Shown: piece by piece, positions 14,141-41,953 of the stretch
Numbering within the stretch: position 1 is the first letter of the stretch
Layout: each line of letters starts with the position of its first letter
DNA from: Macrostomum lignano
Taxonomy: Eukaryota
Assembly: GCA_002269645.1 (NCBI GenBank)
Contig: NIVC01000309.1
Coordinates: forward strand, 496,001-560,000
Direction of reading: 5' to 3'
Length of the DNA: 64,000 bases
Translations under genes and position numbers: made by a program
Notes under the pieces: model-generated
Told to the model about the DNA's origin: nothing
The model's database searches: none
What the model saw: only the letters and a program-made list of their open reading frames with translations

Positions 14141-17100
14141 TCACTCGGAAAATCCGTTCGCCTCAGAAACGAAGTGCGTTGCACCGCCCAGGTCGAAACC
14201 GCTGCTCGAGCCGAAGCTACTCTTCAGTCCACTCTTCCTCGCTTTGCGGGCCCGTTTCCTGCCACTCCTAGGCTTACGGGCGCCACGTCTCTTTCTGCTC
14301 TCCTTTGGCTTGCGAGCGCGTCTCTTTCTGTTCTTTCTGGCCTTGCGACCACGTCTCTTGTTGTTCTTTCTGGCCTTACGACCACGTCTCTTGTTGTTCT
14401 TTCTGGCCTTGCGACCACGTCTCTTGTTGTTCTTTCTGGCCTTACGAGCGCGTGTCTTTCTGTTCTTTCTGGCCTTGCGGCCACGTCTCTTTCTGTTCTT
14501 TCTGGCCTTGCGACCACGTCTCTTGTTGTTCTTTCTGGCCTTGCGACCACGTCTCTTGTTCTTTCTGGCCTTGCGATCAAGTCTCTTGTTGTTCTTTCTG
14601 GCCTTGCGGCCACGTCTCTTTCTATTCTTTCTGGCCTTGCGACCACGTCTCTTTCTGTTCTTTCTGGCTTTGCGACCACGTCTCTTTCTGTTCTTTCTGG
14701 CCTTGCGACCACGTCTCTTGTTGTTCTTTCTGGCCTTGCGACCACGTCTCTTGTTGTTCTTTCTGGCCTTGCGGCCACGTCTCTTTCTGTTCTTTCTGGC
14801 CTTGCGACCACGTCTCTTTCTATTCTTTCTGGCCTTGCGACCACGTCTCTTGTTGTTCTTTCTGGCCTTGCGACCACGTCTCTTTCTGTTCTTTCTAACT
14901 TTGCGACCACGTCTCTTTCTGTTCTTTCTGGCCTTGCGACCACGTCTCTTGTTGTTCTTTCTGGCCTTGCGACCACGTCTCTTGTTGTTCTTTCTGGCCT
15001 TGCGGCCACGTCTCTTTCTGTTCTTTCTGGCCTTGCGGCCACGTCTCTTTCTATTCTTTCTGGCCTTGCGACCACGTCTCTTTCTGTTCTTTCTGGCCTT
15101 GCGACCACGTCTCTTTCTGTTCTTTCTAACTTTGCGACCACGTCTCTTTCTGTTCTTTCTGGCCTTGCGACCACGTCTCTTGTTGTTCTTTCTGGCCTTG
15201 CGACCACGTCTCTTGTTGTTCTTTCTGGCCTTGCGGCCACGTCTCTTTCTATTCTTTCTGGCCTTACGAGGGCGTCTCTTTCTGTTCTTTCTGGCCTTGC
15301 GGCCACGTCTCTTGTTGTTCTTTCTGGCCTTGCGGCCACGTCTCTTTCTGCTCTTTCTGGCCTTGCGGCCACGTCTCTTGTTGTTCTTTCTGGCCTTGCG
15401 GCCACGTCTCTTTCTGCTCTTTCTGGCCTTGCGACCACGTCTCTTGTTGTTCTTTCTGGCCTTGCGACCACGTCTCTTGTTGTTCTTTCTGGCCTTGCGG
15501 CCACGTCTCTTGTTCTTTCTGGCCTTACGAGCGCGTCTCTTTCTGTTCTTTCTGGCCTTGCGACCACGTCTCTTGTTGTTCTTTCTGGCCTTGCGGCCAC
15601 GTCTCTTTCTGCTCTTTCTGGCCTTGCGACCACGTCTCTTGTTGTTCTTTCTGGCCTTGCGACCACGTCTCTTGTTGTTCTTTCTGGCCTTGCGGCCACG
15701 TCTCTTTCTGTTCTTTCTGGCCTTGCGACCACGTCTCTTGTTGTTCTTTCTGGCCTTGCGGCCACGTCTCTTTCTATTCTTTCTGGCCTTGCGACCACGT
15801 CTCTTTCTGTTCTTTCTGGCCTTGCGGCCACGTCTCTTGTTGTTCTTTCTGGCCTTGCGGCTACGCCTCTTGTTCTTTCTGGCCTTGCGAGCGCGTCTCT
15901 TTCTGTTCTTTCTGGCCTTGCGGCCACGTCTCTTGTTGTTCTTTCTGGCCTTGCGACCACGTCTCTTGTTGTTCTTTCTGGCCTTGCGAGCGCGTCTCTT
16001 TCTGTTCTTTCTGGCCTTGCGGCCACGTCTCTTGTTGTTCTTTCTGGCCTTGCGGTTACGTCTCTTGTTGTTCTTTCTGGCCTTGCGGTTACGTCTCTTG
16101 TTGTTCTTTCTGGCCTTGCGACCACGTCTCTTGTTGTTCTTTCTGGCCTTGCGACCACGTCTCTTGTTGTTCTTTCTGGCCTTGCGAGCGCGTCTCTTTC
16201 TGTTCTTTCTGGCCTTGCGGCCACGTCTCTTGTTGTTCTTTCTGGCCTTGCGACCACGTCTCTTGTTGTTCTTTCTGGCCTTACGAGCGCGTCTCTTTCT
16301 GTTCTTTCTGGCCTTGCGGCCACGTCTCTTGTTGTTCTTTCTGGCCTTGCGGTTACGTCTCTTGTTGTTCTTTCTGGCCTTGCGGTTACGTCTCTTGTTG
16401 TTCTTTCTGGCCTTGCGACCACGTCTCTTGTTGTTCTTTCTGGCCTTGCGACCACGTCTCTTGTTGTTCTTTCTGGCCTTGCGAGCGCGTCTCTTTCTGT
16501 TCTTTCTGGCCTTGCGACCACGTCTCTTGTTGTTCTTTCTGGCCTTGCGACCACGTCTCTTGTTGTTCTTTCTGGCCTTGCGGCCACGTCTCTTGTTGTT
16601 CTTTCTGGCCTTACGAGGGCGTCTCTTTCTGTTCTTTCTGGCCTTGCGGCCACGTCTCTTTCTGTTCTTTCTGGCCTTGCGGCCACGTCTCTTGTTGTTC
16701 TTTCTGGCCTTGCGGCTACGCCTCTTGTTCTTTCTGGCCTTACGAGAGCGTCTCTTTCTGTTCTTTCTGGCCTTGCGAGCGCGTCTCTTTCTGTTCTTTC
16801 TGGCCTTACGAGCGCGGCTCTTTCTGTTCTTTCTGGCCTTGCGGCCACGTCTCTTGTTGTTATTTCTGGCCTTGCGGCCACGTCTCTTGTTCTTTCTGGC
16901 CTTACGAGCGCGTCTCTTTCTGTTCTTTCTGGCCTTGCGACCACGTCTCTTGTTGTTCTTTCTGGCCTTGCGGCCACGTCTCTTTCTGCTCTTTCTGGCC
17001 TTGCGACCACGTCTCTTGTTGTTCTTTCTGGCCTTGCGACCACGTCTCTTGTTGTTCTTTCTGGCCTTGCGGCCACGTCTCTTTCTGTTCTTTCTGGCCT

Positions 17101-41100: not shown

Positions 41101-41953
41101 TGCTTTGGAGTACATACGGTCTCTAGAAACAAGAAAGTATTGCTTTGGAGTACATACGGTCTCTAGAAACAAGAAAGTATTGCTTTGGAGTACATACGGT
41201 CTCTAGAAACAAGAAAGTATTGCTTTGGAGTACATACGGTCTCTAGAAACAAGAAAGTATTGCTTTGGAGTACATACGGTCTCTAGAAACAAGAAAGTAT
41301 TGCTTTGGAGTACATACGGTCTCTAGAAACAAGAAAGTATTGCTTTGGAGTACATACGGTCTCTAGAAACAAGAAAGTATTGCTTTGGAGTACATACGGT
41401 CTCTAGAAACAAGAAAGTATTGCTTTGGAGTACATACGGTCTCTAGAAACAAGAAAGTATTGCTTTGGAGTACATACGGTCTCTAGAAACAAGAAAGTAT
41501 TGCTTTGGAGTACATACGGTCTCTAGAAACAAGAAAGTATTGCTTTGGAGCACATACGGTCTCTAGAAACAAGAAAGTATTGCTTTGGAGTACATACGGT
41601 CTCTAGAAACAAGAAAGTATTGCTTTGGAGTACATACGGTCTCTAGAAACAAGAAAGTATTGCTTTGGAGTACATACGGTCGAGTGAGCGGATAGGCACC
41701 AACATTTATATTGTGGGTTTCCACACCTACGCCAACATGTCTTCAAGTCAAGTAAGTCAAATTCAATCAGCTTACCTTCGCTTGAGGCCACTGTGACTCC
41801 AATGCAGAATACTGCAGTGAAAAAAATGTATTCGGAACTTGGTAACTTTTTCTCTATTGACAGCAAAAGAACAACAACAACAACAAAAGCAGAAACAAGT
41901 CACCAACCTGCAAGGAGCAGCACGCCGAGTTTTTGCACTCCTGACGCGCTCAT
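14141..41953 (-). CDS. ap1: Giant secreted Lys/Arg-rich adhesive protein, flatworm adhesion protein 1 (ap1) type; about 6,818 aa after correcting a 1-nt deficit in exon 15
   Basis: 22 coding exons in transcript order: 41953-41908, 41811-41776, 40242-40180, 40097-40023, 39137-39087, 38989-38924, 38418-38362, 38259-38191, 38017-37967, 37840-37763, 37682-25293, 25159-25000, 24625-24393, 24080-23955, 22879-22483, 22154-21781, 21665-21526, 21214-20484, 20337-19800, 19657-18674, 18572-18351, 17709-14141. All are GT-AG and phase-consistent except exon 15. Signal peptide [26 protein letters not shown]. The order KR-repeat / CTL / VWD-C8-TIL / EGF array / KR-repeat matches Macrostomum lignano Mlig-ap1 as I recall it (Wunderer et al. 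2019); no database search was run. Confidence 0.85.
14230..17270 (-). repeat. C-terminal coding Lys/Arg repeat of ap1 (33-nt unit, RKARKN(N/R)KRRG)
   Basis: About 90 in-frame units in the last exon; the length variants are 30 or 33 nt. Confidence 0.9.
17300..21000 (-). other. EGF / calcium-binding EGF array of ap1 (about 20 repeats, exons 18-22)
   Basis: Repeated D(I/V)(D/N)EC...C...C.N..GSY.C.C..G(Y/F).G.G..C motifs in ORFs 20445-21212, 19780-20427, 18660-19673, 18340-18588 and 14141-17701. Confidence 0.92.
21030..22879 (-). other. VWD - C8 - TIL module of ap1 (exons 15-18)
   Basis: [16 protein letters not shown] and GICGDCNG (VWD); GPFAKC...SSCSYDVC...[23 protein letters not shown] (C8); [18 protein letters not shown]...[17 protein letters not shown] (TIL). 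Confidence 0.92.
23004..23205. mobile_element. Palindromic MITE (fold-back element) with TA ends, in ap1 intron 14
   Basis: Inverted arms of about 85 bp (AAGATTCCGTCTGTGGT..TTGAGAGTGCAGGTAAAGTCTC..CTTTGCGAGTGACGCAACT and its reverse complement), flanked by TA on each side (Tc1/mariner-type target). Confidence 0.8.
24393..25159 (-). other. C-type lectin-like domain of ap1 (exons 12-13)
   Basis: [15 protein letters not shown]...SWRGAHRAC....[12 protein letters not shown]...WFGL...FSDGS...[23 protein letters not shown]. Confidence 0.88.
24729..24950 (-). mobile_element. tRNA-derived SINE with CORE-like central domain, copy 1 (ap1 intron 12)
   Basis: A box TAGCCTAGTGG and B box GGTTCAATTC, then GTGTCCTTGAGCAAAACACTCAACTC...CAGTTCACCCAGCTGCAAAAT. 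Colinear with the copy at 62401-62612. Confidence 0.8.
25300..25555 (-). other. Two tandem ShKT domains at the end of ap1 exon 11
   Basis: [35 protein letters not shown] and [37 protein letters not shown] have the six-Cys ShK spacing with a C..TC..C end. Confidence 0.85.
25590..37440 (-). repeat. N-terminal coding Lys/Arg repeat of ap1, in a single 12,390-nt exon
   Basis: Zone A (about 37440-28150): 33-nt [10 protein letters not shown](G/S) and 27-nt RKSSGKKRS units. Zone B (about 28130-25590): 30/33-nt RKPRRKN(R)RKS units. No stop or frameshift in about 4,000 codons. Confidence 0.92.
38530..38800. repeat. Degenerate tandem repeat (GTGAGACTAGATGATAGTCTAAAGAGA-like) in ap1 intron 6
   Basis: About 5-6 imperfect units are visible. 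Confidence 0.6.
39270..39975. repeat. G-rich minisatellite built of 9-bp subunits (CAGGGGAAG/CAGGGGACT/CAGGAGAAG), ap1 intron 4
   Basis: Tandem units are visible; a 1-nt slip occurs near 39565. Confidence 0.95.
40233..41681. repeat. Near-perfect 40-bp tandem array (36 units) in ap1 intron 2; each unit contains a 3' and a 5' splice-site motif
   Basis: Transcript-strand unit TACTCCAAAGCAATACTTTCTTGTTTCTAG-AGACC-GTATG; one substitution seen (41551). Confidence 0.97.

Follow-up and report, generated by a model that had tools for sequence, protein, structure and literature searches.

A Macrostomum lignano locus that very probably encodes adhesion protein 1, with a longer N-terminal Lys/Arg repeat block than the published sequence

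Introduction

Adhesion protein 1 of the flatworm Macrostomum lignano, the product of the gene Mlig-ap1, ranks among the best characterised proteins in reversible underwater adhesion; it serves as a template for biomimetic glues. Its published sequence (MH586844) comprises 5,407 amino acids (aa) (Wunderer et al. 2019, PMC6410801). Three Lys/Arg-rich (KR) regions, A to C, account for over 3,600 aa of it, and the domains lie at residues 2758-4310: a C-type lectin domain, VWD, C8 and TIL domains and 17 calcium-binding EGF modules (PMC6410801). Here, we describe a 64,000-nt stretch of the M. lignano assembly GCA_002269645.1 (contig NIVC01000309.1, positions 496,001 to 560,000; hereafter the window), in which the minus strand from 14141 to 41953 is, with high confidence, the Mlig-ap1 gene.

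Both components of the glue are expressed together in adhesive gland cells of the tail, a result obtained for the ap1 and ap2 genes and not for the particular copy in the window (PMC6410801). [quoted passage not shown] Knockdown of ap1 by RNA interference (RNAi) weakens attachment, and heparin strips ap1 from footprints and blocks attachment, while Mg2+, Lys, Arg or a KR peptide block release (PMC6410801). In the resulting model of a two-protein reversible glue, ap1 is cohesive and ap2 binds the surface (PMC6410801); a model from 2022 adds a Kringle protein that binds lysine, placed on the anchor cell's microvilli (PMC9229212). The gene and its mechanism are thus already known, and what the present analysis adds is minor: a pair of ShKT domains, WxxW modules near the N-terminus, and an orthologue from an environmental sample. 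Recombinant design, estimates of charge and stoichiometry for the attach-and-release model, and the design of antibodies and RNAi all call for a correct full-length sequence.

Results

We compared the window with MH586844 through the published lengths, residue numbers, domain list, antibody epitope, peptides and primers. By exact matching to the translation, the peptide used to raise the published antibody was found 43 times, in every case within array KR-B. All 11 Mlig-AP1 peptides in the mass spectrometry datasets of PMC6410801 match exactly, once each, and eight of them map downstream of a frame break in the VWD exon that is described below. Nine of 18 published Mlig-ap1 primers have exact matches in the window, including some in the 5' and 3' untranslated regions (UTRs), and six further primers match with one to three differences; from the 5' UTR to the 3' UTR, the matching primers lie in the order and orientation to be expected. 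The Cys-rich core between the repeat blocks measures 1,552 aa, against 1,553 aa for residues 2758-4310 of the published protein, and the domain set agrees with the published description, down to the 17 calcium-binding EGFs. At the level of sequence, the epitope, peptide and primer matches identify the locus as Mlig-ap1 itself, and not merely a relative. The first-pass annotation of this DNA had proposed a Macrostomum ap1 gene and had put the published protein at about 5.4k aa, and both statements are borne out. It had also called ap1 a main protein of the glue, a role that PMC6410801 makes specific as cohesion, leaving surface binding to ap2. Its contrast with short-read transcriptomes, which it says usually cannot resolve the full length, is not supported as stated: the published sequence was curated from genome contig scaf1170 and Sanger clones as well as from transcripts.

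Several observations weigh against this identification. Three primers (RNA815_13121.1-F, 13121.3-F and 13121.3-R) match nowhere in the window, primer 27695.2-F finds only diverged sequence, near 14232 at the C-terminal end, and the six near-matching primers are each off by one to three bases. The protein matches neither published version in length, the mass spectrometry database having 4,806 aa and GenBank 5,407 aa, and read literally the frame stops at aa 4,593, so that the full protein is not encoded by the DNA as given. The mismatching and unmatched primers imply at least one other expressed ap1 variant, and the copy in the window need not be the expressed one. They suggest that a second expressed variant lies elsewhere in the genome.

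A search with the core (579 aa) against 5.8 billion database sequences returned no M. lignano protein; it returned one environmental orthologue and a set of cephalopod zonadhesin-like proteins. An exact database look-up of the terminal open reading frame found nothing, and a literature search for a newer M. lignano assembly gave nothing relevant. The orthologue, protein P0001, is encoded on a 10.6-kb environmental contig (L001, 1-10642; ENA ERZ21788738 ctg43218l); as an independent sequence with the repeats and domains arranged alike, it adds to the case for ap1. The best named matches to the core being mollusc zonadhesin-like proteins at 33-35% identity, and the EGF array being fibrillin-like, one could read the locus as a matrix gene without a role in adhesion, of mucin, zonadhesin or fibrillin-like type, whose likeness to ap1 is superficial. 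We consider this extremely improbable and already refuted, as the ap1 peptides, the antibody epitope and the primers match exactly. Two specific assignments were rejected on Pfam evidence. The locus is not of the gel-forming mucin or von Willebrand factor type, having a single VWD-C8-TIL unit and no Pro/Thr/Ser domain, and it is not a fibrillin or LTBP, since it has a calcium-binding EGF array but no TB domain match at E <= 0.01.

The coding strand shows a strong A-over-T bias and huge open reading frames. One of 12.3 kb encodes about 4,000 aa of Lys/Arg repeats followed by two six-cysteine modules, and another of 3.6 kb encodes EGF modules and then a Lys/Arg repeat of another kind, about 1,000 aa long. 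Splice sites were placed by hand at the 5' end and by a frame-aware GT-AG search over the remainder. The resulting model of a spliced, eukaryotic gene has 21 exons, 20 firm and one probable, running from an ATG at 41953-41951 to a stop codon at 14143-14141 (Table 1), with AATAAA motifs in the 3' UTR at 14125 and 13930. Its predicted secreted product of 6,793 aa (~815 kDa, with one codon set to X at the frame break) fits the roughly 6,800 aa given in the first-pass annotation, while two further claims of that annotation need correction: there are 21 exons, not 22 phase-consistent ones, exon 14 changing frame at ~22626/22627, and the model is not complete as it stands, because a one-base break in the VWD exon makes the literal reading frame stop early. 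The protein contains 1,582 Lys and 1,934 Arg against 165 Asp plus Glu, giving a net charge of about +3,350.

The 1,552-aa core reads, in order, two ShKT domains, a C-type lectin domain, an EGF module, VWD, C8, TIL/TILa and a further series of about 19 EGF modules. Pfam supports every domain that had been noticed by eye (ShKT twice, lectin, VWD-C8-TIL and about 20 EGFs), the second ShK match falling below the cut-off. Both ShKT copies are six-cysteine domains of ~36 aa and both are kept in the environmental orthologue, at 39% identity. In the papers on flatworm adhesion proteins that we searched, we found no mention of ShK domains, nor of the N-terminal WxxW and acidic modules; the ShKT pair is so far undescribed, and the published domain map is without it.

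Upstream of the repeats, the protein begins with MSASGVQK, a 16-residue hydrophobic stretch and a VTVA/SS cleavage-like site. By inspection, these would be the n-, h- and c-regions of a putative signal peptide, as seen in the first-pass annotation. Exons 2-10 all begin and finish in phase 1, and exons 3-9 (37763-40242) are single-exon modules, each of them phase 1-1. Three WxxW modules (GEWTEW once and GEWTTW twice) alternate with Ser/Arg-rich modules, WxxW being the consensus for C-mannosylation, and at the end of exon 9, immediately ahead of the polycation, lies a 29-aa block with 13 acidic residues. Exon 3 is the probable one: among in-phase open exons in a 2.6-kb gap it is the best candidate, and its GEWTEW is akin to the GEWTTW of exons 5 and 7. 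When the longer introns were scanned for other missed exons, only exon 3 was convincing. A Pfam match at the N-terminus to the Drosophila family New_glue (17.7 bits, cut-off 31) was put down to Ser-rich composition.

The introns flanking exon 3 are themselves repetitive. Intron 2 carries 36 copies of a 40-bp unit at 99% identity (40233-41681), each of which duplicates the 3' splice site together with the initial 10 nt of exon 3. The array thereby provides 36 decoy acceptors, and it gives rise to pseudo-exons of 45 nt that are in phase and free of stop codons; we rejected these as coding. Intron 3 contains a 9/27-bp microsatellite (39252-39973; GGAAGCAGG...) that reads PESPASPAS on the coding strand and is probably non-coding, since its frame drifts.

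Exon 14 lacks one base at ~22626/22627 (site GCAAGCACACGG), where the DNA reads GTCGCAAGCACACGGTG. When aligned by tblastn, the orthologue P0001 follows one frame up to 22626 and another from there onward. Since the two pieces abut in different frames and the protein is aligned there without a gap, the DNA is one base short of the conserved reading. The only GT-AG intron that would restore the phase (22718-22660, 59 nt) was rejected. It would take out VSWTKFVE, and aligning the domain with P0001 and three cephalopod VWD proteins shows the S, T and V of this segment to be invariant. Such an intron also lowers the Pfam score of the VWD domain from 87.3 to 81.9 bits. No mass spectrometry peptide spanning the break was found in the text of the published supplement.

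We favour an error in the assembly consensus as the probable cause, because the frame downstream is undamaged throughout and secreted peptides match it. Less probable, but deserving weight, is the alternative that the frameshift is real and the window holds such an allele or duplicate of Mlig-ap1, with another intact copy supplying the glue; the transcript of the frameshifted copy would either decay or yield a truncated product of ~4,590 aa holding arrays A and B, the ShKT pair, lectin, EGF and part of VWD. The break sits in unique, non-repetitive sequence where polishing ought to work, the primer mismatches and unmatched primers indicate that other expressed variants exist, and M. lignano has undergone a recent whole-genome duplication (PMC7053086). 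Yet this would be the single disabling change in 20.3 kb of coding sequence, with all downstream splice sites and domains intact and eight secreted peptides encoded beyond it without a mismatch, and loss of one base in a CC/AA context is a typical consensus error of long reads. A consensus error remains our preferred explanation.

The three Lys/Arg arrays together amount to 5,020 aa, in line with the ~5,000 aa of the first-pass annotation, and 4,013 aa of this lie in the single 12.4-kb exon 10, together with the ShKT pair. That annotation had counted two K/R regions with 55-70 percent Lys plus Arg. The percentages hold (59.5-69.8), but there are three repeat types, arranged in two blocks. According to Tandem Repeats Finder, 14283-17248 and 25604-37448 are repetitive with periods of 30, 33 and 60 nt. 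The DNA of KR-A is homogeneous, 74 of its 114 RKSSGKKRS copies having one identical sequence. Self-similarity, measured by an offset scan of the array, revealed two long duplications: 32898-31820 vs. 31845-30767 (1,079 nt, offset 1,053, 99.3% identity) and 33778-32906 vs. 29869-28997 (873 nt, offset 3,909, 99.0% identity). Beyond these, no stretch of at least 450 nt with at least 97% identity was present at any offset. With two long duplications and no other near-identical stretch, the array would be hard, not impossible, to assemble.

The window copy and MH586844 share the same three KR arrays, a core of near-equal length and 17 calcium-binding EGFs, and differ in the flanking blocks. The part before the core has 4,202 aa in the window and 2,757 aa in MH586844, some 1,445 aa more, while the part after it is 58 aa shorter (1,039 vs. 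1,097 aa). The expanded repeats of the first-pass annotation are thus found in the N-terminal block and not in the C-terminal array. The extra ~1,445 aa could be an assembly artefact, a false duplication in a gene whose true product is near 5,407 aa. Near-identity of the KR-A units in DNA, the two long duplications, and the fact that three lengths now exist for one protein (4,806, 5,407 and 6,793 aa) all speak for it. Outside those ~1-kb duplications, though, accurate long reads could place the array, and assemblers in general collapse such arrays more often than they expand them. The frame also stays open over 12.4 kb, which is weak evidence, as other frames are open too. We regard an artefact as somewhat less likely than not.

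A true Mlig-ap1 of ~6,800 aa, a quarter above the reference, is a possibility that we put forward tentatively; on this account array lengths may vary between copies or haplotypes, and the protein may carry the ShKT pair and the WxxW/acidic N-terminus. Array lengths specific to each copy are plausible, given the whole-genome duplication and the mismatching primers. The window as a whole is unusually rich in tandem repeats, which affects the trust to be placed in any repeat length of the assembly.

Around the gene, the window contains four others. A Ras-association domain gene lies at 3100-7280 on the plus strand (PF00788, 21.6 bits), broken up by satellites of 18, 35 and 22 bp, and an open reading frame upstream of it resembles, on visual inspection, a C1 zinc finger. 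At 46288-47668 on the minus strand lies a BSD-domain gene (52 bits). On the plus strand follow an RRM protein whose tail is long and rich in Arg/Glu (56838-58604, 48.8 bits) and, at 61139-63104, the beginning of a protein kinase (40.5 bits), by eye of the NDR/LATS type. More satellites are found at 8249-9907, 10327-11076, 60208-60807 and 63087-64000, with units of 15/66, 41, 16 and 23 bp.

Table 1. Features of the Mlig-ap1 locus, with positions in the window
Feature	Position	Strand	Description
5' UTR	41964..41985	-	extends at least this far upstream; primer RNA815_13121.1b-F exact at 41985-41964
Exon 1	41908..41953	-	start codon and beginning of putative signal peptide; phase 1 at its end
Exon 2	41776..41811	-	rest of putative signal peptide, phase 1-1; primer RNA815_13121.2-F matches with one indel
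Exon 3 (probable)	40180..40242	-	WxxW module, phase 1-1; placed by sequence criteria
Exon 4	39137-39087	-	N-terminal module, phase 1-1
Exon 5	38989-38924	-	N-terminal module with GEWTTW, phase 1-1
Exon 6	38418-38362	-	N-terminal module, phase 1-1
Exon 7	38259-38191	-	N-terminal module with GEWTTW, phase 1-1
Exon 8	38017-37967	-	N-terminal module, phase 1-1
Exon 9	37840-37763	-	phase 1-1; primer 13121.1b-R exact at 37809-37788
Exon 10	25293..37682	-	12,390 nt: KR-A, KR-B, ShKT1, ShKT2
KR-A	28159..37632	-	3,158 aa, 59.5% K+R, 2 acidic residues; units RKSSGKKRS and a 12-aa unit
KR-B	25594..28158	-	855 aa, 69.8% K+R, 1 acidic residue; unit SRKPRRKNR(R)K
ShKT1	25554-25450	-	Pfam ShK (PF01549) 31.4 bits (cut-off 20.9)
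ShKT2	25419-25309	-	Pfam ShK 19.2 bits, just under cut-off 20.9; full length, six Cys
Exons 11-12	25159-25000, 24625-24393	-	C-type lectin domain; two published mass spectrometry peptides match
Exon 13	23955..24080	-	single EGF module
Exon 14	22483..22879	-	first two thirds of VWD, with frame break
Exons 15-16	22154-21781, 21665-21526	-	end of VWD, C8
Exons 17-20	21214-20484, 20337-19800, 19657-18674, 18572-18351	-	TIL, TILa, calcium-binding EGF array
TIL/TILa/calcium-binding EGF segment (exons 17-20 and start of exon 21)	17312..21214	-	primers 317.1c F/R exact
Exon 21	14141..17709	-	last EGFs, KR-C, 32-aa tail, stop codon
KR-C	14240..17260	-	1,007 aa, 67.4% K+R, 2 acidic residues; unit RKARKN(N/R)KRRG
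3' UTR	13821..14140	-	extends at least this far downstream; primers RNA815_27695.1-R and 27695.2-R exact (one at 13842-13821)
Lectin_C			Pfam 44.3 bits
VWD			Pfam 83-87 bits
C8			Pfam 49.6 bits
TIL			Pfam 29 bits
TILa			Pfam 27.7 bits
EGF_CA			Pfam, 17 stretches
EGF_3			Pfam, 18 + 2 stretches

Discussion

The details added here refine a known gene and do not amount to a discovery; the reference length of the protein is unsettled, with ~6,800 aa now standing beside the two published values. The net charge of the protein would drive the polycationic arrays onto polyanions, either the microvillar glycocalyx or, in the 2022 model, the Kringle protein. The lectin, VWD and EGF core would bind and cross-link the glycosylated surface protein ap2, its cysteine-rich domains providing lectin-type and multimerising contacts, and a secreted anionic releasing factor would compete off the cationic arrays. 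Speculatively, the acidic N-terminal block might neutralise or mask the polycation during packaging, before secretion.

How does this architecture compare with that of other proteins? In the cephalopod zonadhesin-like proteins (P0002-P0004), the VWD-C8-TIL unit aligns with that of the window at 33-35% identity, and positions with Cys, Gly and Asp are invariant, but these proteins have VWA and PAN domains and lack the K/R arrays, the ShKT pair and the long calcium-binding EGF array. Sea star footprint protein 1 (Sfp1) and mussel foot protein 2 are cohesive glue proteins and Cys-rich, with VWD, C8, lectin or EGF modules (PMC6410801, discussion); by their descriptions, they are set apart by a different domain order and by having no polycationic K/R arrays. 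The proseriate and polyclad flatworm pairs Mile-ap1 with Mile-ap3, and Tmed-ap1 with Tmed-ap3 (PMC9229212), also combine a lectin/VWD/EGF core with a Gly/Arg/Lys-rich polycation. There, the two parts are separate proteins, whereas in the window both are fused in one gene.

The environmental orthologue on L001 and the ap1 proteins of other Macrostomum species (PMC8621496) have the core in the same order as the window. For the latter, the published transcriptomes yielded only short stubs of the repeats (PMC8621496). L001, at 36-43% identity, runs from K/R repeats through the ShKT pair, lectin, EGF, VWD, C8 and TIL to the EGFs, as in the window. Its repeat of ~900 aa (60% K+R, 9% His; unit RKHRKSRKSHRRRRGGHKRRKRVVKKTS) shifts frame once, near 1606-1653. 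In contrast to this shared order, its repeat unit is unrelated in sequence to those of the window, and its core, almost intron-less, has far fewer introns. As far as the sequences go, this comparison shows conservation of the fused architecture and of the ShKT pair, alongside a repeat unit that can change freely.

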